Position numbers and translations under genes: made by a program. From Rebecca billardiae RCC1528 (taxonomy: Eukaryota; Protista; Haptophyta), in NCBI GenBank assembly GCA_965240325.2, contig OZ251239.1, forward strand, positions 1,240,001 through 1,304,000: a stretch of DNA of 64,000 bases, written 5' to 3'. Below are positions 2,660 to 64,000 of this stretch, piece after piece; the first letter of the stretch is position 1; the number at the start of each line of letters is the position of its first letter. The notes beneath the pieces are model-generated. The model had not been told where the DNA came from. It saw nothing but the letters and a program-made list of their open reading frames with translations, and ran no database searches.

Positions 2660-5487
<2,828 letters not shown>

Positions 5488-36939: not shown

Positions 36940-37139
<200 letters not shown>

Positions 37140-43918: not shown

Positions 43919-43983
<65 letters not shown>
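43919..43983. repeat. (TA)n microsatellite
   Basis: Perfect TA run immediately after the GTCGTTAA motif. Confidence 0.95.
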
Positions 43984-47630: not shown

Positions 47631-48413
47631 TCAGCGCGCGGCTGCCGCATCAGCCGGGCCCGCCCCTTGCGCTCCCAGCGGCACGGCGACGGGCGCGGAT
47701 TGGGCGTGCGACTGCGAGGCAGGCGGCGGGCCTGACTGCGGCTGCCCTGCCGAGGGCGGAGGATGCCACACGGGCGTCAGCCCGAGGTCCTTCTGCAGCT
47801 CGACCGCCTTCTGCACCTCGTGCGAGCGCAGCTCGAACTTTGGCACCTCGTACTTGGCCAGCTTGCGCCGCTCCGCCGGGCCCGACACGCCGTCGCGCAC
47901 GTGCACGGGCGTGTTGGTGAGTACCTTGAGTAACGCGGAGCGCACATCCTCAGCGCGCGCGCCCGACGCGTACCAGACCTCCAGGCGGTAGAGCGGGCGG
48001 CCGCGCGCGCTCTTGTCGCACACGCGCGCGCCCGTGATCCCGCCGTTCGGCTCGAGCGTCTCCGTCACCATCGCCAGCACGATCAGCTCCCAGAGCGCGT
48101 CGAGCACGCCCGGCGCAAATGACTTGCGCGCGAACCACTCGCCGCCGCGCTCGTTGACGGGGTCCTCCCACTTGGGAAGGATGCCGTCGCGGAAGACGGA
48201 GAGGGACTCGACTGTGCGCCCGACGCACACGCCCCGCTGGAACAGCTCGCTCGGCGGCGGCACGTGCGAGTAGTAGCTCCAAAAGTCCTCCGCGGTCGCC
48301 GTCATCCCCAGCCGGCGCATCTTTGTGTCCCAGCTCGCCTGGCCGTCGGCATCGGCGAGGTGCTCGTACCACACCCAGCTCGCCCGCAGTGGCGTCGCCG
48401 GTGCGCCGTCCAT
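47631..48413 (-). CDS. eIF4E: Eukaryotic translation initiation factor 4E family protein
   Basis: PLRASWVWY..SWD..TAEDFWSYY..SVFRDGILPKWEDPVNERGGEW..LWELIVLAM..ITGARVCDK..YRLEVW; cap-stacking Trp residues retained. Confidence 0.93.
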   Translation of the reverse strand: MDGAPATPLRASWVWYEHLADADGQASWDTKMRRLGMTATAEDFWSYYSHVPPPSELFQRGVCVGRTVESLSVFRDGILPKWEDPVNERGGEWFARKSFAPGVLDALWELIVLAMVTETLEPNGGITGARVCDKSARGRPLYRLEVWYASGARAEDVRSALLKVLTNTPVHVRDGVSGPAERRKLAKYEVPKFELRSHEVQKAVELQKDLGLTPVWHPPPSAGQPQSGPPPASQSHAQSAPVAVPLGAQGAGPADAAAAR

Positions 48414-48703: not shown

Positions 48704-50245
48704 TCAGACCTGCTGCCCCGCTGCGCCGACCGGGAACTGGCGCAGGAACGCCTCCGCGCCGCCCTTCTCGATGCACTCGCGCATCGGCCGGCCGCGCGCG
48801 AGGATGTCCTCCTCGGTGCAGTCCTCTCGGAAGTCGCAGCACAGCCCGTAGCCGTCGACCGAGACAAAGGGCGGGAGGCTGCCCGTGCGCGTGCGCGCGT
48901 TCATGCCAAAGTAGATCGAGCGCCCGACCTGCGAGCCGAACGAGCCGACGAACATGTCCGCGTGCGAGAGCACCTCCAGCTCCGCCGCGAGCGAGAGCGG
49001 CACGTGCTCGTCCAGGTTTTGACGAAACTCGACCCACGGCTTGGGCTTGGCGAGCTGCTCGCGCGGCCAGTCGACCGTCACCCAGTCGAAGGAGGTGGTG
49101 TTCGACACGGCCTCGCGCACGATGGCGGGGTCGTCGGTGGCGAGGTACACGGTCTGCAGCCCGTACCGCTCGCGCAGCATCTCGAGCTCGCGCGCGTACA
49201 CGTCCCACGTGTAGCAGTACCGGAAGAGCCGCTTGCCGCCCCGGATCATCATGTTGCGCGGGCCCTTGGTGCGCTGCTGCGACCCCTCGCACGAGTCGCC
49301 GTGCCGGACCTGCACCGCCGCGCTCGGGCCGGTGCGGCCCGGGCAGCGGGGCGGGATGGTGCCCATCTCGGCGGGCCGGCCGTCCGCGCAGCGCACGCGG
49401 ATGCGCGGGCGGAGGTACTCGAGCAGCGCGTCCGTCGGCCGCGTGAGCGCGCGCATCACCACCCCCATCAGCACGTACTGCAGCGGAGAGTCAGGGCCGA
49501 CCGCGCCGGGCGGCCAGACGGCGGCGGGCGGCCGCGCCGTGGCGGGCGGCGGCGGCTTGGGCGGGAAGCGCTCCCAGAGGCAGAACCAGCCCGCCCGCCG
49601 CCCTGGGCAGATCGTCCCGTTCCGCGTGTAGTGCCAGTCCGGGTCGTCCCGGACCTGCCAGCGCATCTGCGCCGGCAGGCCGGCGACGGCGCGCGCCGGG
49701 TTGGTGAGCGCCGCGTGGTTGGCGACGGCGAACTGGTGGAGCATCTTGCCCACCGTGCACGGGTGCTTGCGGTCGTTGATCACGTAGATGTTCTCCACAC
49801 GCCGCGAGCCGCGGCCGCTCACGTGAAAGTCGTCGGCGTGCGCGCCCGCGAGCGCGGCGTACGTCTCGTCCAGCGCCTGCTGCTGGCAGCGCGCGACGCG
49901 CGCGTCGGCGAACTCGGCGCGCCATCTCGCCGGCTCGGGGAGCTGGCTGAGCATGATGTCGAAGCGCTCGTCGCACTGCTGCCCCACGCGTCCCGGCGGG
50001 CAGCCGCGCAGCCGGAGGAGCGGCACGTCGCGCTCGTCGTCGAGGTCGCACGGGCGCTCGGCGGGAGCGGCCGCGCGCGCGGCCGGGCCGTCGATCGCTC
50101 GCGCGGGGTGCTCCGGCGCGTCCGCCGCGGCGAAGGTGACCACCGCCGTCGTGCGCGCGATCTCGCGCGCCCACACGCGCTGCACGACGAGCCACGCCGT
50201 CACGCACGCGAGCGCCACGAGCATGGCCGCGCTGGTCGAGCGCAT
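48704..50245 (-). CDS. GT23 / alpha-1,6-fucosyltransferase-like (FUT8/NodZ-type) type II membrane glycosyltransferase
   Basis: N-terminal TM (AAMLVALACVTAWLVV); motifs AVQVRHGDSC, VYLATDD and ELEVLSHADMFVGSFGSQVGR. Confidence 0.8.
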   Translation of the reverse strand: MRSTSAAMLVALACVTAWLVVQRVWAREIARTTAVVTFAAADAPEHPARAIDGPAARAAAPAERPCDLDDERDVPLLRLRGCPPGRVGQQCDERFDIMLSQLPEPARWRAEFADARVARCQQQALDETYAALAGAHADDFHVSGRGSRRVENIYVINDRKHPCTVGKMLHQFAVANHAALTNPARAVAGLPAQMRWQVRDDPDWHYTRNGTICPGRRAGWFCLWERFPPKPPPPATARPPAAVWPPGAVGPDSPLQYVLMGVVMRALTRPTDALLEYLRPRIRVRCADGRPAEMGTIPPRCPGRTGPSAAVQVRHGDSCEGSQQRTKGPRNMMIRGGKRLFRYCYTWDVYARELEMLRERYGLQTVYLATDDPAIVREAVSNTTSFDWVTVDWPREQLAKPKPWVEFRQNLDEHVPLSLAAELEVLSHADMFVGSFGSQVGRSIYFGMNARTRTGSLPPFVSVDGYGLCCDFREDCTEEDILARGRPMRECIEKGGAEAFLRQFPVGAAGQQV

Positions 50246-50494
50246 CGTGCCGACGGCGACAGGGAGCGCCGGGCTGCTTCTTGGCGACCAGGTACGGTAG
50301 AGCTGCGCAAAACGACTGTACGTACGACTGTTGATCACTTGATTGTACTCGTCGTTTCAATATAGAGTGTACGTACGATGTTGATCATCAGTGTGCGGCG
50401 TGCGCGATGGCACTGTGTTTCAGAACTTCATGCAGACTCATGCTAGCGCCCCCTCTGCAGCTGGATACATCCACCAGCCTCCTTCAGCATGCAA

Positions 50495-52009
50495 TCATCG
50501 ACGCGACGGCGCTGCAGCTGCTGGCTCGCGCACCCGCGCCTCGAGCTCGCGCAGGTAGTGCAGCGTAGCGTGGTGCTCAGTCTCATCTCGTGTCGCGGGG
50601 CCCTCGCGCACTTCGCCGGCCGGTGGTGCACCCGCGGGCTCGGCACCGCCCTCCATGACCAAGCGCAGCACGCGCAGGTGCGACGGGTCGGCCGCCTGCT
50701 CGACGAGACGCAGCCGTGTGCGCTCACGCACGAGCTCGGCGCGCGTGTGCACGAGCTCGGCGCGCATGCGCTCGGTGGCGGCGCGCTCGGCGGCGAGCTC
50801 GGCGGCAGCATCGGCGTGCCGCGTGCTTGCGGCGGGCTCGACCAGCCGGCCGAGCAGCGGAGCGTCTGCCACATGCTCCTCGCCACCTCCACCGCGTGGC
50901 CCGTCAGCGGGCGGTGCAGTGCCCAGGGCGGGCTGCGTGTGCGCTGCATGCGCCCTGCTCGGCCCCGCGCGCTTGCCCGGCCCATCGCCGCGGCTGCGCA
51001 GGCCGCTGCCGCTCGCGACGTCAGGGCGTCGCGGAGGGCGAGCCTCGGCGCGAGCCGTGGCCCTCGGCTGCTGTGGATGCGACTGCGAGCCAGTGGCTGC
51101 GGCAGCTGCTGGGGTCGGGGTGCCGCCATTGTGCTGCACACGCCGGCGCTTTGTGCTGCCCCCCAGCCGAGGCTCAGGAGCTGCAGCCCGCTTGCACTCG
51201 CGCCACGCGCGCTTGCTGATCATGCCATCCAGCTTGTGCGTAGCGCAGCGACTGAGACGTTTGTCGCCCGGCATGCCAAAGGACGGATGCTTGTCACAGC
51301 CGGCATGCTCACACCTGGGGTTCTTCACGTCCACCATGCCGGCCAGCTTGTGCGTGGCGCAGCGGCTGGCACGTGTGTCACCCGGCATGCCAAAGTACGG
51401 CACCTTGTCACAGCCGGCATGCTCGCACCTGCGGTTGTGCACGTTGACCATGCCAGCCAGCTTGTGCGTGGCGCAGCGGCTGGGGCGTGTGTCGCCCGGC
51501 ATGCCGTAGCCCGGCTGCTTGTCACAGCCGGCATGCTCGCACCTGCGGCTCTTCACGTCCACCATGCCGGCCAGCGTGTGCGTGGCGCAGCGGCTGGCAC
51601 GTGTGTCGCCAGGCATGCCGAAGGACGGCTGCTTGTCACAGCCGGCATGCTCACACCTGGGGTTCTTCACGTCCACCATGCCGGCCAGCTTGTGCGTGGC
51701 GCAGCGGCTGGCACGTGTGTCACCCGGCATGCCAAAGTACGGCACCTTGTCACAGCCGGCATGCTCGCACCTGCGGTTGACCACGTCCACCATGCCGGCC
51801 AGCTTGTGCGTGGCGCAGCGGCTGGGGCGTGTGTCGCCCGGCATGCCGTAGCCCGGCCGCTTGTCACAGCCGGCATGCTCGCACCTGCGGTTGTGCACGT
51901 TGACCATGCCAGCCAGCTTGTGCGTGGCGCAGCGGGTGCGGGTTGTGTCGCCGGGCATGCCGAAGGACGCCTGCTTGTCACAGCCGGCTCGATTGCACGT
52001 GCGGGGCAT
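50495..52009 (-). CDS. EsV-1-7-type repeat protein, paralog 2 (7 repeats, intact)
   Basis: 504-aa intronless ORF: seven 38-aa Cys/His repeats, NLS-like segment and the shared coiled-coil C-terminus. Confidence 0.88.
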   Translation of the reverse strand: MPRTCNRAGCDKQASFGMPGDTTRTRCATHKLAGMVNVHNRRCEHAGCDKRPGYGMPGDTRPSRCATHKLAGMVDVVNRRCEHAGCDKVPYFGMPGDTRASRCATHKLAGMVDVKNPRCEHAGCDKQPSFGMPGDTRASRCATHTLAGMVDVKSRRCEHAGCDKQPGYGMPGDTRPSRCATHKLAGMVNVHNRRCEHAGCDKVPYFGMPGDTRASRCATHKLAGMVDVKNPRCEHAGCDKHPSFGMPGDKRLSRCATHKLDGMISKRAWRECKRAAAPEPRLGGSTKRRRVQHNGGTPTPAAAAATGSQSHPQQPRATARAEARPPRRPDVASGSGLRSRGDGPGKRAGPSRAHAAHTQPALGTAPPADGPRGGGGEEHVADAPLLGRLVEPAASTRHADAAAELAAERAATERMRAELVHTRAELVRERTRLRLVEQAADPSHLRVLRLVMEGGAEPAGAPPAGEVREGPATRDETEHHATLHYLRELEARVREPAAAAPSRR

Positions 52010-52115
52010 CCCCCTGTGTGGACTACGCGAGGAAGGTGGAGTGCCGCAAGGATGATGGTGAAAAATGACTTATCGAGGCGAGGCCGTCGTCATCGTGCGC
52101 CAGCCTGGCCGGAGT

Positions 52116-55100
52116 CAAGGCCGTATGGATTCAATCTTTCATGAAAGATTGAAATGGCCATTGAAAGTTTCAGTATTTTTCATGAAAATTTCATGAAAAG
52201 TGAAAGATTGTGAAGTTTTCACGTCCTGCGCTGCGGGAATTAATTTATTCCCAGCAGTGACTAAAATGATTTTCCGCCCACCATGTCGGCGGCATCGAGC
52301 CGCCTCGGCGGAGCAAGGCCGGGCGCTACGGCGCGTGCGGCGCGTGAGGCGCGCGCACGCACGCGCGTGGCGCGCTCCACCTTGCTTAGCCCCGGCTTTT
52401 GTCCTGCTCCCTGGCTCCCTGCTGCGCGTCTCCGCGCCGCAGACTGACGGCGCCGACTACTACGAGCCGTGATCACACGGCGGCTCGGCGCGTGTGAGCC
52501 TGCTGTATGAGCGAGCTCAGACGACCGAGGTCGAGGCTGACTTCGACCGGCTGCTGCAGGAGAAGCCTCAGCAGGAGCTCGAGGCTGAGAAGGCTGCTGA
52601 GCGCTTGCGGACGCTGACTCTGGACAACCGGGTGATGGATTCTATGGAGCCACTGTCGCCTTGGGGGTGCTCGGTGCTCTCGAGGCCCGAGATGTTGTTG
52701 AATGTTTCGCTGCAGGGTGTATGAAGGGCTGACGGAAGGCATGCCGAGGATAGTAGCATGTTGCGCCAAGGCCGCATGCCGTGACAGTGACGATCCACGC
52801 GCTGTCGGCCAGCACCGCTGGCTTGCCGTGCGCAGCCGCGCCACGCGCGGCCATGCTGGCAAGGAATATATTTTCGGAGAAAATCACGTCATTTTTTATT
52901 CCCGCCGAGCAATCTTTCATGAAAGATTGGAATAAGCCCATTTCACGTAACCAACCTCCAATAGCTGGCGGGTGTCTGAACTACAAACAATTCTGTCCGA
53001 GCCGAGAGGAGTTTGGGGGGAGGGCCGGGGCGGTGAGCCGCGTTGCCAGCCGCTCGGTGGCGCCGCCGCCGAGGTCGTCTCCGCGTCACACATCGACGTG
53101 CGTCGGTGTGATGTGTCTCATCGGGCGTGTGTGAGTACTTGCAGGGGCCCTGCATTCCTTTAAGGCTCGGCATCGCACTCCTCCGAGTGTGCACGCTCGT
53201 CAACGCCGTGCCGTGCGACTGCTGCGCGTGTGGGCTTACACGCCGGCAATGTAGGCGAGACGAGCGGGGCTGAGCGCCAAGAGATGGGCGCTTCCACGCG
53301 GGAGTAGTCTGGTGCGAGGCCCCCGATCCCTCGCGCATCGGCTCGAAGCGCGCCTGGAGCTGAAGTAGCGAGTCTGTCCGCTGCCCACGCGATGGCCACA
53401 CCATCGTCCAAATCGCAGAAACACGTCGTTCTGAGGTGTTTTAGCTCAGCTTGGGATGGGGGAGACAAGACTGTGCAGGAGAGTGCCCAGTGCTTCAGGC
53501 ACGCTTCGAGCCGATGCGCGAGGGATCGGGGGCCTCGCACCAGACTACTCCCGCGTGGAAGCGCCCATCTCTTGGCGCTCAGCCCCGCTCGTCTCGCCTA
53601 CATTGCCGGCGTGTAAGCCCACACGCGCAGCAGTCGCACGGCACGGCGTTGACGAGCGTGCACACTCGGAGGAGTGCGATGCCGAGCCTTAAAGGAATGC
53701 AGGGCCCCTGCAAGTACTCACACACGCCCGATGAGACACATCACACCGACGCACGTCGATGTGTGACGCGGAGACGACCTCGGCGGCGGCGCCACCGAGC
53801 GGCTGGCAACGCGGCTCACCGCCCCGGCCCTCCCCCCAAACTCCTCTCGGCTCGGACAGAATTGTTTGTAGTTCAGACTCCCGCCAGCTATTGGAGGTTG
53901 GTTACGTGAAATGGGCTTATGGCCTTTGAAACTTTCAGTATTTTTCATGAAAATTTCATGAAATGAAAGATTGTGAAATATTTCATCCACATCCATAGTC
54001 AAGGGTAGTAAGGGCAAGGGAGGCTCCCTTGGTAAGGGTGAGCACTCCGCTGGCGACAGCCGCGAAGGTCGGCAGCCCTCTGTTTGCCGCGAGCGGAGCG
54101 GAGCGAGTGCTATCAGCGGCGGAGGGCGCTGAGGCCGCGCACGGCGTGAGGCGCGGCGTCGGCCGAGTCGGTCCGCGGAGGATGCGCGGCGCTCGGCCCG
54201 CTGCGCAGCGGCAGTGCGCCTCACTTTGCCCCGAGCGCCGTCCTCCGCGTCGCCTCCTTCCCGCCTTGGAGCAGCACGCATGTGCGCGCCGGCACCTTGA
54301 AGGCGGCACGGGCTTGCTCAGACGACCGCGCGCGCGTGGCGCGCGACTTGGTCGGCTGCGCGCGCGCGCCGCCGCGGTGCAAGGTAGCGCCGCCGCATGC
54401 GCGCGCCGTGCCAGCGCGAGAGCGTGTGCGCGGACCTGAGTGCGACCTCACACACATGTCGAATGCTGCTTGGCATCCGACTTGCGGACTGACGGGAAGC
54501 TGGAAAAGACAGCGGCGTGAGTGTTGGTACCATCGATGCGGAGCCTTAGCGTCCACTTGCATTCGTGCTGAGAAGGAATAGACAAGACTAGGCCTTCGTC
54601 CTGGGTATCCAATGTCACTCAACACCTCGCTGATCGACCCGACGAGTGCCAGCGTGAGGCACAGCAAATCATTCGTGAGAGCAAGCAGACAAGCGAGCAC
54701 TACGCTCATGAGATGGCCGTGAGCAAAGGCTCGCGCGGGCACGGCGCGCGCATGTGGTGGCGCTACCTTGCACCGCGGCGGCGCGCGCGCGCAGCCGACC
54801 AAGTCGCGCGCCACGCGCGCGCGGTCGTCTGAGCAAGCCCGTGCCGCCTTCAAGGTGGCGGCGCGCACATGCGTGCTGCTCCAAGGCGGGAAGGAGGCGA
54901 CGCGGAGGACGGCGCTCGGGGCAAAGTGAGGCGCACTGCCGCTGCGCAGCGGGCCGAGCGCCGCGCATCCTCCGCGGACCGACTCGGCCGACGCCGCGCC
55001 TCACGCCGTGCGCGGCCTCAGCGCCCTCCGCCGCTGATAGCACTCGCTCCGCTCCGCTCGCGGCAAACAGAGGGCTGCCGACCTCGCGGCTGTCGCCAGC

Positions 55101-55126
55101 GGAGTTGCTCACCCTTACTACCCTTG
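52116..55126. mobile_element. Composite non-autonomous foldback insertion, CAAGG...CCTTG termini, 7-bp TSD CCGGAGT (P/Galileo-like)
   Basis: CCGGAGT|CAAGG at 52109-52120 and CCTTG|CCGGAGT at 55122-55133. Empty site cctggccggagtgccttg at about 57466 and 61836. Contains palindromes 52932-53360/53492-53920 and 54000-54420/54730-55126. Confidence 0.8.
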
Positions 55127-55294
55127 CCGGAGTGCCTTTGCCGGACGCGGGAAGCTGGAAAGCACCTGTCAACGGAAGGGTGTCAGACTTGGATCTCGCA
55201 GCCGGCGAGATCGGCCCGCCCGCGCGAATCTGCTCGGCTGCCGCCTGCCAGCGGTCCGACCGCGGCACCGCGCGCGCTCGCCGCGCGCGAGGGA

Positions 55295-55612
55295 ATGGCG
55301 CTCGGCCGCCCGGCGGCGCGGCCGAAGGATGCGTCGTTCGACGAGGCGTGGACGCTCGTCGACCCCGCGCAGCCCTCCTCCCCGCCGCGCCAGTCCGCCG
55401 CCGCCGACGCCGCCGACGCGGCGGACGCGGACGCGCACAGCCTCGTGCGCTGTCGCATCTGCGAGGTGCTGGTTGACGCCGCGGCGATCCAGTCGCACGC
55501 GCAGCTGTGCGTGCTGGTGTGCGCGCACGCGCAGGAGGCGTGCGCGGTGAACGAGAGGCTGCTCACCGTCGACCGCCGCCTCGCCGCCTCGATCGCGCAG
55601 AGTGCGAGCTAG
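55295..55612 (+). pseudogene. Truncated 5' copy of the AGC kinase gene (105-aa ORF retaining the CRICE..H..C finger)
   Basis: MALGRPAARPKDASFDEAWTLVDP..CRICEVLVDAAAIQSHAQLC..SAS*, nearly identical to the start of the gene at 61979. Confidence 0.8.
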
Positions 55613-55863
55613 CGGGGCCGCTGTGCGGTGTGCCGCTCAGGCGAGACCGCGAGTGCCGGTCCTGCGCGATGTCGAGAGACGAGCTAAGGACGGACCGGGA
55701 TCATCGGACGAGAGTCGTGATGCCACGCGTGACCAAGATGGCGGGCCGCCCGGTGGCGCCATTACCTCATGGCACCACTCTCCCACAGCGGCCGGCCAGC
55801 GTGACATCATAGTATTCCGGATTGCGTCGCGCGATTCCCGATTCAGAGAATCAGTCAATCAGC

Positions 55864-57369
55864 CTACGTCGTCCCGACTGGACGGACGCCGCTGACGCCT
55901 GGCGCACGCACCCGCGCCTCCAGCTCGCGCAGGTACCGCAGCGTGGCATCGCGCTCATCATCAGACCCACCGCGTGTTGTCGCCCCCCCGCGCACGTCGC
56001 CGGCCAGTGGTGCGCCCGCGGGCTCGGCGCCGCCCTCCATGACCAAGCGCAGCACGCGCAGGTGCGACGGGTCGGCCGCCTGCTCGACGAGACGCAGCCG
56101 CATGCGCGCGCGCACGAGCTCGGCGCGCATGCGCTCGGTGGCGGCGCGCTCGGCAGCGAGCTCGGCGGCAGCGTCGGCGTGCCGCGTGTCCGCGGCGGGC
56201 TTATCGACCAGCCGGCCGAGCAGCGGGGCATCTGCCGCATGCCCACGGCCGGCGCTGCTGCCCGGCCCGTCCGCGGGAGGAGGAGTGCTTAGGGCTGGCT
56301 GTGTGTGCGCTGCATGCGCCCTGCTCGGCCCCGCGCGCTTGCCCGGCCCATCGCCGCGGCTGCGCAGGCCGCTGCCGCTCGCGACGTCAGGGCGTCGCGG
56401 AGGGCGAGCCTCGGCGCGAGCCGTGGCCCTCGGCTGCTGTGGATGCGACTGCGAGCCAGCGGCTGCGGCAGCTGCAGTCGTGCCGCTGTTGCGCTGCACG
56501 CGCATGCGCTTTGCGCTGCCGCCCTGCTGAGGCCCAGGAGCTGTAGCCCGCTTCCGCTCGCGCCAGGCGCGCACGCTGATCATGCCGGCCAGCTTGTGCG
56601 TGGCGCATCGACTGAGACGTGTGTCGCCCGGCATGCCGAAGGACGGCACCTTGTCACATCCAGCATGCTCACACCTGCGGCTGTTCACGTCGACCATGCC
56701 AGCCAGCTTGTGCGTGGCACAGCGGCTGGCACGTGTGTCACCAGGCATGCCGCAGGACGGCTGCTTGTCACAGCCGGCATGCTCGCACCTGGGGTGCTTT
56801 ACGTCGACCATGCCGGCCAGCTTGTGCGTGGCGCAGCGGCTGGCACGTGTGTCACCCGGCATGCCAAAGTACGGCTGCTTGTCACAGCCGGCATGCTCGC
56901 ACCTGCGGCTCTTCACGTCGACCATGCCGGCCAGCTTGTGCGTGCCACAGCGGCTAGCACGTTTGCCGCCCGGCATGCCAAAGGACGGCTGCTTGTCACA
57001 GCCGGCATGCTCGCACCTGCGGTTGGTCACGTCCACCATGCCGGCCAGCTTGTGCGTGCCACAGCGGCTAGCACGTTTGCCGCCCGGCATGCCAAAGGAC
57101 GGCTGCTTGTCACAGCCGGCATGCTCGCACCTGCGGTTGGTCACGTCCACCATGCCGGCCAGCTTGTGCGTGCCACAGCGGCTAGCACGTTTGCCGCCCG
57201 GCATGCCAAAGGACGGCTGCTTGTCACAGCCGGCATGCTCGCACCTGCGGTTGGTCACGTCCACCATGCCGGCCAGCTTGTGCGTGCCGCAGCGGCTGGC
57301 ACGTGTGTCGCCGGGCATGCCGAAGGACGGCCGCTTGTCACAGCCGGCTCGATTGCACGTGCGGGGCAT
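55864..57369 (-). CDS. EsV-1-7-type repeat protein, paralog 3 (7 repeats, intact)
   Basis: 501-aa ORF with the same architecture as paralog 2 but different variable residues. Confidence 0.88.
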   Translation of the reverse strand: MPRTCNRAGCDKRPSFGMPGDTRASRCGTHKLAGMVDVTNRRCEHAGCDKQPSFGMPGGKRASRCGTHKLAGMVDVTNRRCEHAGCDKQPSFGMPGGKRASRCGTHKLAGMVDVTNRRCEHAGCDKQPSFGMPGGKRASRCGTHKLAGMVDVKSRRCEHAGCDKQPYFGMPGDTRASRCATHKLAGMVDVKHPRCEHAGCDKQPSCGMPGDTRASRCATHKLAGMVDVNSRRCEHAGCDKVPSFGMPGDTRLSRCATHKLAGMISVRAWRERKRATAPGPQQGGSAKRMRVQRNSGTTAAAAAAGSQSHPQQPRATARAEARPPRRPDVASGSGLRSRGDGPGKRAGPSRAHAAHTQPALSTPPPADGPGSSAGRGHAADAPLLGRLVDKPAADTRHADAAAELAAERAATERMRAELVRARMRLRLVEQAADPSHLRVLRLVMEGGAEPAGAPLAGDVRGGATTRGGSDDERDATLRYLRELEARVRAPGVSGVRPVGTT

Positions 57370-57597
57370 CCCCCCGTGTCGACTACGCGAGGAAGGTGGA
57401 GTGCCGCAAGGATGATGGGGATGACTTATCGAGGCGAGGCCGTCAATCCGTCATCGTGCGCCAAGCCTGGCCGGAGTGCCTTGCCGGACGTGGGAAGCAC
57501 TTCAGACTGGATCTCGCAGCAGGCGAGATCGGCCCGTCCGCGCGAATCTGCTCGGCTGCCAGCGGTCCGACCGCGGCACCGCGCGCGCTCTGAGGGA

Positions 57598-57905
57598 ATG
57601 GCGCTCGGCCGCCCGGCGGCGCGGCCGAAGGAGGCGTCGTTCGACGAGGCATGGACGCTCGTCGACCCCGCGCAGCCCTCGTCCCCGCCGCGCCAGTCCG
57701 CCGCCGCCGCCGCCGCCGACGCGGCGGACGCGGACGCGCACAGCCTCGTGCGCTGTCGCATCACTGCGAGGTGTTGGTCGACGCCGCGGGGATCCAGTCG
57801 CACGCGCAGCTGTGCGTGCCTGTGTGCGCGCACGCGCAGGAGGCGTGCGCGGCGAACGAGCGGCTGCTCGCCGTCGACCGCCACCCCGCCGCCTCGTCCA
57901 CGTAG
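57598..57905 (+). pseudogene. Second truncated, frameshifted 5' copy of the AGC kinase gene
   Basis: Same ATG context; 2-nt insertion in the zinc-finger codons (cgcatcACtgcgag, about 57763); similarity ends at about 57900. Confidence 0.8.
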
Positions 57906-58168
57906 TGCGAGCGGGGCCACTGCGCCGACGCTCACTGGCGAGACCGCGAGTGCAGTCCCCCAGTGTCGATCGGAGAGTGACGACTAAGCCCGCCGGGACT
58001 TACTGGGATTATCATCGACTCACAGAGTCATGATGCCACGCCTGGCCATGGCGGCGGGCCGCCTGATGGCGCTCTTACCTCATGGTACCACTCTCCACCA
58101 GCGGCCGGCCAGCCGACCCGCGTCCGTGCACGGTCCGTGACGTACTCAGTTCATTCAAAACTGCGCCG

Positions 58169-58606
58169 TCATTCCGATAATCGGCCGGTCGTCTCGACCG
58201 GGACGGGCGCCGCTGACGCATGGCTCACGCACCCGCGCCTCCAGCTCGCGCAGGTACCGCAGCGTGGCATCGCGCTCATCATCAGACCCACCGCGTGTTG
58301 AGTCGCCCCCCCGCGCACGTCGCCGGCCCGTGGTGTGCCCGCGGGCTCGGCCGCGCCCTCCGTGACCAAGCGCAGCACGCGCAGGTGTGACGGGTCGGCC
58401 GCCTGCTCGACGAGACGCAGCCGCATGCGCGCGCGCACGAGCTCGGCGCGCATGCGCTCGGTGGCGGCACGCTCGGCGGCGAGCTCAGCGGTAGCGTCGG
58501 CGGGACGCGTGTCCGTCGGGCTCGACCAGCCGGCCGAGCAGCGGAGCATCTGCTCCATGCCCACTGCCGTCGCTGCTGCCCGGCCCGTCCGCGGGCGGAG
58601 CAGTGC
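58169..58606 (-). pseudogene. Decayed C-terminal region of EsV-1-7 paralog 4
   Basis: Homologous to the coiled-coil tail of paralogs 1-3 but downstream of a TAA at 58607-9, with further indels at about 58515 (-2) and 58301 (+2). Confidence 0.75.
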
Positions 58607-61600
58607 TTAGGGGGGCTGTGTGCGCGCTGCGTGCGCCCTGCTCGGCCCCGCGCGCTTGCCCGGCCCATCGCCGCGGCTGCGCGGGCCACTGCCACTCGCG
58701 ACATCAGAGCGACGCGGAGGGCGAGCCTCGGCGCGAGCTGTGGCCCTCGGTGGCTGTGGATGCGACTGCGAGCCAGTGGCTGCGGCAGCTGCAGTCGTGC
58801 CGCTGTTGCGCTGCACGCGCATGCGCTTTGCGCCGCCACCCTGCTGAGGCTCAGGGGCTGCAGCCCGCTTCCGCTCGCGCCAGGCGCGCACATTGATCAT
58901 GCCAGCCAGCTTGTGCGTGGCGCATCGACTGAGACGTGTGTCACCCGGCATGCCGTGGGATGGATGCTTGTCACAGCCGGCATGCTCGCACCTGCGGTTG
59001 GTCACGTCGACCATGCCGGCCAGCTTGTGTGTGGCGCAGCGGCTGGGATGTGTGCCGCCCGGCATGCCACAGGACGGCCGCTTGTCACAGCCGGCATGCT
59101 CGCACCTGCGGCTCTTCACGTCCACCATGCCGGCCAGCTTGTGCGTGGCGCAACGGCTGGCACGTGTGTCGCCAGGCATGCCACAGGACGGATGCTTGTC
59201 ACAGCCGGCATGCTCGCACCTGCGGCTCCTCACGTCGACCATGCCGGCCAGCTTGTGTGTGGCGCAGCGGCTGGCACGTTTGTCGCCCGGCTTGCCGAAG
59301 TGCGGCTGCTTGTCACAGCCGGCATGCTCGCACCTGCGGCTCTTCACGTCCACCATGCCGGCCAGCTTGTGCGTGGCGCAGCGGCTGGCACGCGTGTCGC
59401 CGGGCATGCCGAAGGACGGATGCTTGTCACAGCCGGCATGTTCGCACCTGCGGCTGACCACGTCGACCATGCCGGCCAGCTTGTGTGTGGCGCAGCGGCT
59501 GGCACGTTTGTCGCCCGGCTTGCCGAAGTGCGGCTGCTTGTCACAGCCGGCATGTTCGCACCTGCGGCTCTTCACGTCGACCATGCCGGCCAGCTTGTGC
59601 GTGGCGCAACGGCTGGCACGTGTGTCGCCCGGCATGCCACAGGACGGATGCTTGTCACAGCCGGCATGCTCGCACCTGCGGCTCCTCACGTCGACCATGC
59701 CGGCCAGCTTGTGTGTGGCGCAGCGGCTGGCACGTTTGTCGCCCGGCTTGCCGAAGTGCGGCTGCTTGTCACAGCCGGCATGCTCGCACCTGCGGCTCTT
59801 CACGTCCACCATGCCGGCCAGCTTGTGCGTGGCGCAGCGGCTGGCACGTGTGTCGCCAGGCATGCCACAGGACGGATGCTTGTCACAGCCGGCATGCTCG
59901 CACCTGCGGCTCCTCACGTCGACCATGCCGGCCAGCTTGTGTGTGGCGCAGCGGCTGGCACGTTTGTCGCCCGGCTTGCCGAAGTGCGGCTGCTTGTCAC
60001 AGCCGGCATGCTCGCACCTGCGGCTCTTCACGTCCACCATGCCGGCCAGCTTGTGCGTGGCGCAGCGGCTGGCACGCGTGTCGCCGGGCATGCCGAAGGA
60101 CGGATGCTTGTCACAGCCGGCATGTTCGCACCTGCGGCTGACCACGTCGACCATGCCGGCCAGCTTGTGTGTGGCGCAGCGGCTGGCACGTTTGTCGCCC
60201 GGCTTGCCGAAGTGCGGCTGCTTGTCACAGCCGGCATGTTCGCACCTGCGGCTCTTCACGTCGACCATGCCGGCCAGCTTGTGCGTGGCGCAACGGCTGG
60301 CACGTGTGTCGCCCGGCATGCCACAGGACGGATGCTTGTCACAGCCGGCATGCTCGCACCTGCGGCTCCTCACGTCGACCATGCCGGCCAGCTTGTGTGT
60401 GGCGCAGCGGCTGGCACGTTTGTCGCCCGGCTTGCCGAAGTGCGGCTGCTTGTCACAGCCGGCATGCTCGCACCTGCGGCTCTTCACGTCCACCATGCCG
60501 GCCAGCTTGTGCGTGGCGCAGCGGCTGGCACGTGTGTCGCCAGGCATGCCACAGGACGGATGCTTGTCACAGCCGGCATGCTCGCACCTGCGGCTCCTCA
60601 CGTCGACCATGCCGGCCAGCTTGTGTGTGGCGCAGCGGCTGGCACGTTTGTCGCCCGGCTTGCCGAAGTGCGGCTGCTTGTCACAGCCGGCATGCTCGCA
60701 CCTGCGGCTCTTCACGTCCACCATGCCGGCCAGCTTGTGCGTGGCGCAGCGGCTGGCACGCGTGTCGCCGGGCATGCCGAAGGACGGATGCTTGTCACAG
60801 CCGGCATGTTCGCACCTGCGGCTGACCACGTCGACCATGCCGGCCAGCTTGTGTGTGGCGCAGCGGCTGGCACGTTTGTCGCCCGGCTTGCCGAAGTGCG
60901 GCTGCTTGTCACAGCCGGCATGTTCGCACCTGCGGCTCTTCACGTCGACCATGCCGGCCAGCTTGTGCGTGGCGCAACGGCTGGCACGTGTGTCGCCCGG
61001 CATGCCACAGGACGGATGCTTGTCACAGCCGGCATGCTCGCACCTGCGGCTCCTCACGTCGACCATGCCGGCCAGCTTGTGTGTGGCGCAGCGGCTGGCA
61101 CGTTTGTCGCCCGGCTTGCCGAAGTGCGGCTGCTTGTCACAGCCGGCATGCTCGCACCTGCGGCTCTTCACGTCCACCATGCCGGCCAGCTTGTGCGTGG
61201 CGCAGCGGCTGGCACGCGTGTCGCCGGGCATGCCGAAGGACGGATGCTTGTCACAGCCGGCATGTTCGCACCTGCGGCTGACCACGTCGACCATGCCGGC
61301 CAGCTTGTGTGTGGCGCAGCGGCTGGCACGTTTGTCGCCCGGCTTGCCGAAGTGCGGCTGCTTGTCACAGCCGGCATGCTCGCACCTGCGGCTCTTCACG
61401 TCCACCATGCCGGCCAGCTTGTGCGTGGCGCAGCGGCTGGCACGCGTGTCGCCAGGCATGCCGAAGGACGGCCACTTGTCACAGCCGGCATGCTCGCACC
61501 TGCGGCTCTTCACGTCGACCATGCCGGCCAGCTTGTGCGTGGCGCAACGGCTGGCACGTGTGTCGCCCGGCATGCCACAGGACGGATGCTTGTCACAGCC

Positions 61601-61738
61601 GGCATGCTCGCACCTGCGGCTCCTCACGTCGACCATGCCGGCCAGCTTGTGCGTGACGCAGCGGCTGGCACGTGTGTCGCCGGGCATGCCGAAGGACGGC
61701 CACTTGTCACAGCCGGCTCGATTGCACGTGAAGGGCAT
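58607..61738 (-). CDS. EsV-1-7-type repeat protein, paralog 4 (25 repeats; C-terminally truncated)
   Basis: 1043-aa ORF. First repeat Cys codon at 61726 and last at 58990 gives 24 x 114 bp, so 25 repeats. NLS-like segment retained; premature TAA in a C6 run. Confidence 0.85.
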   Translation of the reverse strand: MPFTCNRAGCDKWPSFGMPGDTRASRCVTHKLAGMVDVRSRRCEHAGCDKHPSCGMPGDTRASRCATHKLAGMVDVKSRRCEHAGCDKWPSFGMPGDTRASRCATHKLAGMVDVKSRRCEHAGCDKQPHFGKPGDKRASRCATHKLAGMVDVVSRRCEHAGCDKHPSFGMPGDTRASRCATHKLAGMVDVKSRRCEHAGCDKQPHFGKPGDKRASRCATHKLAGMVDVRSRRCEHAGCDKHPSCGMPGDTRASRCATHKLAGMVDVKSRRCEHAGCDKQPHFGKPGDKRASRCATHKLAGMVDVVSRRCEHAGCDKHPSFGMPGDTRASRCATHKLAGMVDVKSRRCEHAGCDKQPHFGKPGDKRASRCATHKLAGMVDVRSRRCEHAGCDKHPSCGMPGDTRASRCATHKLAGMVDVKSRRCEHAGCDKQPHFGKPGDKRASRCATHKLAGMVDVRSRRCEHAGCDKHPSCGMPGDTRASRCATHKLAGMVDVKSRRCEHAGCDKQPHFGKPGDKRASRCATHKLAGMVDVVSRRCEHAGCDKHPSFGMPGDTRASRCATHKLAGMVDVKSRRCEHAGCDKQPHFGKPGDKRASRCATHKLAGMVDVRSRRCEHAGCDKHPSCGMPGDTRASRCATHKLAGMVDVKSRRCEHAGCDKQPHFGKPGDKRASRCATHKLAGMVDVRSRRCEHAGCDKHPSCGMPGDTRASRCATHKLAGMVDVKSRRCEHAGCDKQPHFGKPGDKRASRCATHKLAGMVDVVSRRCEHAGCDKHPSFGMPGDTRASRCATHKLAGMVDVKSRRCEHAGCDKQPHFGKPGDKRASRCATHKLAGMVDVRSRRCEHAGCDKHPSCGMPGDTRASRCATHKLAGMVDVKSRRCEHAGCDKRPSCGMPGGTHPSRCATHKLAGMVDVTNRRCEHAGCDKHPSHGMPGDTRLSRCATHKLAGMINVRAWRERKRAAAPEPQQGGGAKRMRVQRNSGTTAAAAATGSQSHPQPPRATARAEARPPRRSDVASGSGPRSRGDGPGKRAGPSRAHAARTQPP

Positions 61739-61978
61739 CCCCCCGTGTCGACTACGCGAGGAAGGTGGAGTGCCGCAAGGATGATGGGGATGACTTATCG
61801 AGGCGAGGCCGTCAATCCGTCATCGTGCGCCAAGCCTGGCCGGAGTGCCTTGCCGGACGCGGGTTCGAAGCACTTCAGACTGGATCTCGCAGCCGGCGAG
61901 ATCGGCCCGCCCGCGCGAATCTGCTCGGCTGCCAGCGGTCCGACTGCGGCACCGCGCCCGCTCGCCGCGCGCGAGGGA

Positions 61979-62079
61979 ATGGCGCTCGGCCGCCCGGCGG
62001 CGCGGCCGAAGGAGGCGTCGTTCGACGAGGCATGGACGCTCGTCGACCCCGCGCAGCCCTCCTCCCCGCCGCGCCAGTC

Positions 62080-62112
<33 letters not shown>

Positions 62113-64000
62113 GGACGCGGACGCGCACAGCCTCGTGCGCTGTCGCATCTGCGAGGTGTTGGTCGATGCCGCGGCGATCCAGTCGCACGCGCAGCTGTGC
62201 GTGCTGGTGTGCGCGCACGCGCAGGAGGCGTGCGCGGCGAACGAGCGGCTGCTCGCCGTCGACCGCCGCCTCGCCGCCTCGATCGCGCAGCGCGAGCAGC
62301 TGCACGCGCTCGAGCTGCGCGACAGCGCGCCTCCGCTCCGGCCGATTTTCGCGCCGATCGTCTCGCTCGCGTCGCGCGTGCTGTGGCTGCCCTCGGCGCG
62401 CGGCGGCGCGGAGCAGCGGCGCGAGGAGCCGCACGCCGCCGCGCCCCGCGCCGCGCCCGCCGCGGACGACGGCGAGCTCGCCCCCGCCTCCTCCTCCTTT
62501 GAAACTGGCCGGCTGCTGCGGCTTCGGGAGATCGTGGCGGCCGCGGTGGGCGATGATGGCTCGGCCGCGGCGGCGGCGGCGGCGCAGGAGGCGCACGTGC
62601 TCGCGCTCGCGCAGTCGCGCGCGTCGGACGAGGGCGACGAGGAGTCGGCGGACGGTGCCGCGGACGAGGCGAGCGCGCCAGCCGAGCCCAGCTGGGGCGC
62701 GGGCGCGCTCGGCGCGGCCGGCGGCGGCGCGGCCGGCGCGGCGGGTGCGGCCGGCGGCGCGGCGGACGCGGAGGTGCCGGGCGGCGTGCCGCTGCGCGCG
62801 CTCGCGGAGGAGGTGGACGGGCTGGTCCGCGCGGCGCGCTCGCAGCTCGGCGCCGCGTGCGTCGAGGCCGTCCTCGGCAGCGCCGTCCTCCGCCTCCTCC
62901 GCGCGCGCGCCGAGTCCCTCTGCCGACTGCGAGTGCGCGTCGCGCGCCTGCCGCCGCGCGAGGCGCGCGAGCACGGCGCGCCGGCGGAGGCGGCGCACGC
63001 CGAGTCGGCGTCGGCGGGCGCGCAGGTGCCGTGCATCCGCGACTTTGACGTCGTGCGCGAGCTCGCCGCCGGCGGCTTCGGCCGCGTCTACCTCGCGCGC
63101 AAGCGCGTGACCGGCGACGCCTACGCGATCAAAGTGCTGCCCAAGCCGGCCGGCGGCGGCTTCGACTCGCGCGACGAGGCGGTGCGCCGGCGCGCGCTGG
63201 CGGAGCGCGAGGCGCTGGCGCGCGCGGACCACCCGTGCGTCGTGCGCCTCTTCTACTGCTTCCAGTCCGCGCGCTCGCTCTACCTCGTCATGGAGTTCCT
63301 CCCAGGTGGCGACATGCGCGCGCTGCTCCGCGCCGCGTGCCGATTGGACGAGGCGCGATCTCGGCTGTATCTCGCGGACGCGGTGCTCGGGCTGGAGTAC
63401 TTGCACGAGCAGCTGGGGATCGTGCACCGGGACCTGAAGCCGGAGAACATGCTGCTCGGCGCGGACGGGCACGTCAAGCTCGCCGACTTTGGGCTGGCGT
63501 GGGTGCGCCGCCGCGCGAAGGGCGGCGGCGCGCGCGGCGGCGCGCGCGGCGGCGCGGCGGGCGGCGCGGAGGGCGGCGGCGCGGCCGAGGCTGAGGGGGG
63601 CGCGCCGGCTGCCTACGGCGTGGCGGGCGGGCACGCCGCGCACGCGGCCGCGCCCACCGGCGTGTCGGCCGCGGAGCTCGCCGAGAGCGGCGCGTGTGTG
63701 CCGAGCCCCGCCCTCGCCGCGGAGCACGCGCCCAGCGCGGACGGCGGCGATGACGCGCGCGGCGCGGCGCCTCCCGGCAACATGGCCGCCGCGGCCGCGG
63801 CCGGCGGCGCGGCGGCGCAGCAGCAGGCGGCGGCGGCGGCGGCGGCGGCGCGCGCGGAGGGCGAGGACGAGGGGCGGTGCTTCTCCCTCGTCGGCTCGCT
63901 CCCGTACCTCGCGCCCGAGGTCGTCCTCGGCAGCGGCCACTCCTGCCCGGTCGACTGGTGGGCGGTGGGCGTTTTATTATTCGAATTTGTTTGCGGCTAT
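61979..64000 (+). CDS. AGC Ser/Thr kinase of the Greatwall/MAST/Rim15/IRE type (3' end outside window)
   Basis: Open frame from ATG 61979 to the window end, absent from the ORF track because it has no stop. N-terminal CRICE..SHAQLC finger; IRDFDVVRELAAGGFGRVYLARKRVTGDAYAIKVL, LYLVMEFLPGGD, HRDLKPENML, DFGL, long insert, VGSLPYLAPE, DWWAVGV. Confidence 0.92.

Follow-up and report, generated by a model that had tools for sequence, protein, structure and literature searches.

Four paralogous open reading frames (ORFs), here called P1 to P4, lie in the 64,000-nucleotide stretch of Rebecca billardiae DNA that we analyzed (the window, in whose numbering all positions are given), and in each of them the N-terminal half is built of tandem 114-bp repeats encoding 38 amino acids. 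These genes are members of the known EsV-1-7 cysteine-rich repeat family (PF19114), and we consider it modestly probable that they encode nuclear, modular nucleic-acid-binding arrays, most likely for DNA, which evolve by shuffling of their units. This nuclear DNA-binding reading is favored because related arrays are fused to nuclease-like domains and vary at the same positions, because the window arrays are basic and followed by a motif resembling a nuclear localization signal (NLS), and because one position of the unit changes in excess of neutral expectation. A preliminary description had reported the repeats and their variable residues and proposed a programmable binding system; its observation was confirmed and its interpretation was partly supported.

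Membership in the EsV-1-7 family, already suggested in that description, was settled by a hidden Markov model (HMM) search with Pfam. The EsV_1_7_cys model, with a gathering score of 25 bits, scored 326 bits for P2 (E 1.4e-99), 338 bits for P3 (E 2.2e-103) and 1165 bits for P4 (E 0), with 7, 7 and 25 matched stretches, respectively. Side matches of P4 to HypF_C, Inv-AAD and Zf_WRKY19 were set aside as sums of weak matches in which no single stretch passed, and they arise because P4 carries 25 repeated Cys/His motifs. The unit follows the motif C-x4-C-x16-C-x2-H, and all 42 units in the window lie exactly 38 amino acids apart; they fall into 26 distinct sequences at the DNA level and 23 at the protein level, with zero entropy at 14 positions, C1, C6, C23 and H26 among them. 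Two otherwise conserved scaffold positions appear to have undergone a clade-specific change, position 13 being G in all window units (N in 88% of family units) and position 22 being R in all window units (Y or F in 93% of the family).

The predicted structure is consistent with a chain of small metal-binding modules. An AlphaFold2 (AF2) model of the P2 seven-unit array (residues 1-272) was confident (predicted local distance difference test score, pLDDT, 91.2; predicted template modeling score, pTM, 0.61) and placed short beta strands at unit positions 12-13, 22 and 32-33, with no helix within the array. Together with the Cys3His ligand pattern, this metal-free model suggests that each module probably holds one zinc ion. 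No solved structure helps further, since the array found nothing in the PDB by Foldseek (best E 0.84) or by VIA-align against 48,161 chains (best Z 2.4), and a profile of the arrays found nothing among PDB sequences.

Two of the genes are complete. P2 (50495-52009, minus strand, 504 amino acids) consists of a seven-unit array (51200-51997), a bipartite NLS-like motif at about 51140-51193 and a P/A/R/G-rich, then helical tail region (50495-51199), and P3 (55864-57369, minus strand, 501 amino acids) likewise has a seven-unit array (56560-57357) and a tail (55864-56559). Of P1 (3-1067, plus strand), only the 3' part lies within the window, whose start truncates the gene: one incomplete and three full units, which end near position 395, are followed by the NLS-like linker and a conserved tail that aligns with those of P2 and P3. 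P4 (58607-61738, minus strand) is an ORF of 1043 amino acids in which a 25-unit array (58877-61726), with repeat periods of 114 and 456 bp, precedes the NLS-like linker. Extraction of units from the translated ORFs gave at least three units for P1 (start missing), seven each for P2 and P3 and 25 for P4, the last as previously counted, and Tandem Repeats Finder returned a period of 114 bp with copy numbers of 6.7, 6.7 and 24.7 for P2, P3 and P4. The strings of residue tetrads reported for P2 (QASF-RPGY-VPYF-QPSF-QPGY-VPYF-HPSF) and P3 (RPSF-QPSF-QPSF-QPSF-QPYF-QPSC-VPSF) were recovered exactly, as were the full lists of tetrads and dipeptides found at the two variable slots of the unit.

The basic linker that the preliminary description noted as shared and NLS-like proved to be a motif, KR-x12-KR(R/M)R, that agrees with the bipartite NLS consensus and lies directly after the array in all four copies. 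The arrays themselves are as basic as had been proposed, with a net charge of +3 to +3.7 per unit. Behind the linker, the tail is P/A/R/G-rich and then A/E/R/L-rich, and a crude heptad count, bearing on the coiled coil proposed for it earlier, gave only a weak bias. It had no Pfam match, no homologue at E <=0.001 among candidates from 5.8 billion proteins, no useful neighbor in an ESM Atlas search by features (best score 0.71, below the useful level) and no BLAST similarity to 103 homologue tails, and on these grounds we call it an orphan. The tail had been put forward as an effector domain; with neither a homologue nor a Pfam family, no effector function can be assigned to it.

P4 differs from the other copies at its 3' end, where a remnant of the helical tail (58169-58564, minus strand) was recognized out of frame from the ORF list and a DNA alignment of the four tails. 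In this alignment, a 1-bp deletion near 58612 puts the TAA at 58607-58609 in frame, and a second deletion, of 2 bp, lies near 58517, with the tail remnant downstream of it; because of these deletions, P4 either encodes a truncated protein, has become a pseudogene or reflects an error of assembly. The frameshift and early stop of P4, the tail without a homologue and the fact that no transcript evidence was obtained would all fit a cluster that is decaying or silent, that is, a group of recent segmental duplicates, one of them broken, which are unexpressed and without present function. We regard this as very improbable, since the ratio of nonsynonymous to synonymous differences per site (pN/pS) is 0.26 in the unit scaffold and the ORFs of P2 and P3 are unbroken and preceded by a conserved upstream segment. 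Over their full length, moreover, the tails of P1, P2 and P3 align, with a synonymous divergence (dS) of 0.25-0.27 and a ratio of nonsynonymous to synonymous divergence (dN/dS) of 0.39-0.49, which argues that they have been kept as coding sequence. Purifying selection thus acts on both scaffold and tail.

We examined how units are related within and between the arrays. The first units of P3 and P4 (P3.1 and P4.1) are mutual nearest relatives across genes, and the same holds for the last units (P1.3, P2.7, P3.7 and P4.25). Inner units, on the other hand, often have their closest match in another gene or an exact copy within their own array (P2.3 and P2.6; P3.2 and P3.3). These nearest-unit relations bear out the earlier suggestion of recombination, with units duplicated and exchanged between paralogues. 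Units 4-23 of P4 are made up of two kinds of di-unit, A (QPHF..VS then HPSF..KS) and B (QPHF..RS then HPSC..KS), in the order AB ABB ABB AB, which fits the 456-bp period and a further one of 684 bp. Most of the P4 array is therefore a recent higher-order duplication, and its 25 units amount to about 8 unit types rather than 25 independent "letters".

The positions at which units differ were then ranked by entropy over the 42 units, and the highest values fell at positions 35, 9, 36, 11, 20, 37 and 12, in that order. The two variable slots of the preliminary description, a tetrad at positions 9-12 and a dipeptide at 35 and 36, are thus real, but variation is not confined to them, being strong also at positions 20 and 37 and lesser at 18 and 33. 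By the Nei-Gojobori method on distinct units, pN/pS was 1.57 over the seven variable positions, compared with the low scaffold value given above, and 1.8 at positions 35 and 36 together. Positions 9, 11 and 12, by contrast, gave a joint value of only about 1.0, which is compatible with a mere lack of constraint.

Because choosing positions by their variability makes such ratios circular, we simulated neutral codon evolution along a tree built from the 26 distinct units, with its scale set to match the observed pS of 0.23; the tree is an approximation, since units recombine, and the sample is only 26 sequences. The pN of position 35, 0.647, was reached by the highest codon of a simulation in just 0.05% of runs (P 0.0005). 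Positions 9, 11 and 36 were nominally high only (P 0.015-0.034), position 20 was borderline (P 0.06), and positions 12, 37, 18 and 33 were within neutral expectation. Five codons had a pN of at least 0.39 where 1.8 were expected (P 0.03), and 19 of the 38 had a pN of 0.05 or less where 2.3 were expected. A fair summary is that the scaffold is frozen, one position is clearly faster than neutral, three are suggestive and the rest are merely unconstrained. With regard to the positive selection anticipated at both slots, position 35 lies above neutral expectation, positions 9, 11 and 36 do so nominally, and the joint ratio of the first slot shows no excess.

Evidence on what the arrays might bind came from their relatives. 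The best homologues are 40-51% identical to the window proteins, with the match confined to the array half; named sources include Coccomyxa, Sphacelaria, Heterosigma, Discosporangium, Scytosiphon and Effrenium, and most of the others are metagenomic. A Logan protein, P0049, reaches 67% identity over four units and has an NLS-like KRQRR and a proline-rich tail. The EsV-1-7 clusters found by a shape search of the ESM Atlas were almost all from Nucleocytoviricota. In 158 of the 225 retrieved homologues, the array is followed by a conserved C-terminal domain of about 190 amino acids (for example, P0005:335-539), in which a CxxC..CxxC ribbon precedes invariant R-P-D, E-x-D-E-x-Q-H and R-x-N-P-D motifs.

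This domain is unnamed by Pfam, and its profile found no PDB sequence. An AF2 model of it (pLDDT 91, pTM 0.81) gave a Foldseek list composed almost purely of PD-(D/E)xK nucleases at E of about 0.01 (McrC, SfsA, Bax1, DdmD, Vsr, Hjc, PspGI and arenavirus endonucleases). VIA-align placed the catalytic domain of the homing endonuclease I-Bth0305I at the top (Z 8.9, 94 of 97 residues, root-mean-square deviation 3.0) and Vsr next (Z 8.0). By its model, the domain has a Vsr/I-Bth0305I-like PD-(D/E)xK nuclease fold. Two of these genes, encoding P0012 and P0004, lie on giant-virus contigs (L001 10001-11329 and L004 10001-11689), within a few kb of the genes for major capsid protein and VLTF3. Free-standing homing endonucleases often adjoin core genes, a position comparable to that of these two array-nuclease genes. 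In addition, an ESM Atlas cluster of 52 members, labeled Uroviricota, combines EsV-1-7 units with a GIY-YIG nuclease domain, a label that is automatic only and that we treat as a lead. In the literature searched, we found no paper linking EsV-1-7 to nucleases.

The same unit positions vary in these relatives. Among the 78 distant, nuclease-bearing homologues with in-register units, most of them apparently on giant-virus contigs, within-protein differences were greatest at positions 11, 36, 9 and 35, which were set apart from the fifth-ranked position, and the first 40 homologues had given the same result. The variable slots are therefore a property of the family and not of this locus. Along the sequence, each C-x4-C knuckle has positions 35 and 36 of the preceding unit on one side and positions 9-12 of its own unit on the other, so that the two slots may form one patch per zinc site. 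For the nucleic-acid recognition that had been suggested, the nuclease-like domains and the shared variable positions provide support, although of an indirect kind.

The window arrays probably read DNA, since in giant-virus relatives such chains are linked to a domain of DNA-cutting type. Small, basic, beta-rich Cys3His modules might also suit the binding of RNA or single-stranded nucleic acid, in the manner of CCHC or CCCH zinc-knuckle chains, in which case the arrays would act after transcription, and nothing separates DNA from RNA for the window proteins themselves. We find this improbable, however, because the nuclease domains joined to the arrays in relatives (Vsr/EDxHD-like and GIY-YIG) are of types that cut DNA and the NLS-like motif is conserved.

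The main rival to DNA reading sees the arrays as zinc scaffolds with a structural or protein-binding role, or as unspecific binders of polyanions, whose variable positions are unconstrained surface and whose differences between paralogues are neutral by-products of tandem duplication. The joint ratio of about 1.0 at positions 9, 11 and 12 and the neutral behavior of positions 12, 37, 18 and 33 would be expected of such a scaffold; unconstrained positions, too, would vary family-wide, and no fold relative with known DNA binding was found by Foldseek, VIA-align or the PDB profile search. Position 35, however, lies beyond neutral expectation, and five codons exceed the neutral 95% range while half of the unit is frozen. 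In viruses, furthermore, such arrays are joined to two unrelated nuclease domains and so stand where a DNA-targeting module usually does, and the slot residues (Q, R, H, K, N, S, T, W and Y) are, judged by eye only, of types that typically contact bases. On this evidence, we rate the scaffold explanation as rather unlikely.

Several further points nevertheless count against nuclear, DNA-binding arrays. We know of no EsV-1-7 protein with binding data. The window genes have no nuclease domain by BLAST of their tails, by Pfam or in the large protein collection, and the DNA reading therefore rests on relatives that are 40-50% identical. P4 is truncated, the first slot shows no joint excess of nonsynonymous change, and the neutral simulation carries the limits of tree and sample given above. 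The only sequencing run found, of unknown kind and available as contigs, left the tails of P2 and P3 uncovered; its contigs, of 150-400 bases, fell on intergenic parts and on a few repeat units, and the run is uninformative either way.

If the arrays do bind DNA in the nucleus, their working can be outlined. The frozen scaffold would build a regular basic rod, along which positions 9, 11 and 12, after the first zinc knuckle of a unit, and positions 35 and 36, before the next, would set what is bound. The tail would probably serve self-association or the recruitment of a partner in the nucleus. Arrays change by duplication, loss and exchange of blocks of one to six units through unequal crossing-over, and fast turnover of residues at the variable positions adds to this change.

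The four genes are members of a duplicated cassette, recognized by self-BLAST, which comprises the gene, a conserved proximal upstream segment and a further upstream segment. The proximal segment of P2 (52010-52115, minus strand) is 88% identical to the segments before P3 (57370-57477) and P4 (61739-61846). The upstream segment of P3 as a whole (57370-58113, minus strand) is 93% identical to that of P4 (61739-62297, minus strand) and 85% identical to a third copy at 55183-55800. The further segment accordingly occurs three times in the window (55183-55800, 57502-58113 and 61875-62290), at 85-94% identity. Between the 55183-55800 copy and P2 lie about 3 kb that hold two inverted-repeat pairs, 52932-53360/53492-53920 (429 bp, 99.3% identity) and 54032-54420/54730-55118 (390 bp, 98.5% identity); the ORFs of this stretch have no Pfam match, and it may be an insertion. 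The scanned ORFs at 61765-63110 were also without a Pfam match.

P2 is adjoined by an ORF of the eIF4E family (47631-48413, minus strand; PF01652, E 1e-25) and by one with a weak FUT8-like glycosyltransferase match (48704-50338, minus strand; E 0.003, below threshold). We considered whether the locus stems from an integrated giant virus and rejected this, as these two neighbors indicate a cellular rather than a viral setting and the G+C content of the window is about 70%. Elsewhere in the window, three 194-bp copies of 100% identity (2790-2983, 3517-3710 and 4471-4664) are spaced about 730-950 bp apart and adjoined by a perfect (AT)64 run (2662-2789); similar AT runs occur at 36942-37075 and 43920-43983, in surrounding DNA of 60-70% G+C.

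In brown algae, the EsV-1-7 family has many members, among them the developmental regulator IMM. Tandem-clustered EsV-1-7 genes have already been described for brown algae (10.1101/2024.02.19.579948), the function of the family has been called unknown (PMC7457493), and Ectocarpus EsV-1-7 genes carry no other Pfam domain (10.64898/2026.04.27.720984). P2 and P3, with seven units each, share scaffold and tail but differ in their unit strings, and viral relatives set the same modules before nucleases; the ligand question for EsV-1-7 thereby becomes a direct experiment. Should the modules read DNA piecewise, they would constitute a new compact zinc-based scaffold for DNA recognition; otherwise, the cluster is an ordinary lineage-specific expansion of a repeat family.

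A bolder extension, which we offer tentatively and hold to be doubtful as a whole, is that EsV-1-7 arrays form, beside C2H2 fingers and the repeats of transcription activator-like (TAL) effectors (TALEs), a third class of modular proteins that naturally read DNA. Each module would read a short DNA step through positions 9, 11, 35 and 36; in giant viruses and some phages the arrays would serve to aim Vsr-like or GIY-YIG nucleases, and algae would have co-opted them as fast-evolving nuclear regulators. The viral array-nucleases would then be natural counterparts of zinc-finger nucleases and TAL effector nucleases, and the present cluster would be a natural unit-swap series.

Comparison with known systems shows where these analogies hold. 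TAL effectors resemble the window arrays in their length, in having near-identical units with differences at fixed places, in their shuffling by recombination and in carrying an NLS or NLS-like motif, yet the likeness is functional only. TALE repeats are metal-free helical hairpins of 33-35 residues with their repeat-variable di-residue at positions 12 and 13, whereas the window units are 38-residue Cys3His modules of beta type in the model, and Pfam gives only EsV_1_7_cys. The arrays of PRDM9 and KRAB proteins are likewise tandem zinc modules that undergo unequal crossing-over and change fast at a few positions per unit. Window units, however, are not C2H2 beta-beta-alpha fingers, firm evidence for positive selection in them concerns one position only, and zf-C2H2, KRAB and SET had no Pfam match in the window genes. 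The analogy with TALEs, PRDM9 and KRAB zinc-finger proteins drawn in the preliminary description therefore stands for the mode of working and not for fold or sequence. Its stronger form, a programmable TALE-like system, was not accepted, there being no evidence of a one-unit-one-base code, an effector, a target or expression, and viral or transposon targets find no support in the analysis.

In the ESM Atlas, the cluster outside EsV-1-7 that comes closest in predicted shape is labeled as the plant WRKY19-type zinc finger (PF24906), with a template modeling score (TM-score) of 0.25. This finger also gives weak HMM matches on the C-x4-C knuckle, which span about 10 residues and lie below the Pfam threshold for P2 and P3, and the resemblance is a lead rather than a relationship. 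With other members of the EsV-1-7 family (Ectocarpus IMMEDIATE UPRIGHT, EsV-1 ORF 7), the window genes and their homologues have the motif and the 38-residue period in common, but the window units are far more alike within a gene, one gene has 25 of them and the tail is an orphan. The nearest relatives of the arrays are those of the giant-virus array-nuclease proteins (such as P0005, P0012 and P0004; 40-51% identity), which have the same unit length and the same variable positions 9, 11, 35 and 36. Where these proteins carry a zinc ribbon and nuclease, the window genes instead have the NLS-like linker and a low-complexity, helical tail, a layout that also occurs in other cellular homologues such as P0049 and Coccomyxa P0013.

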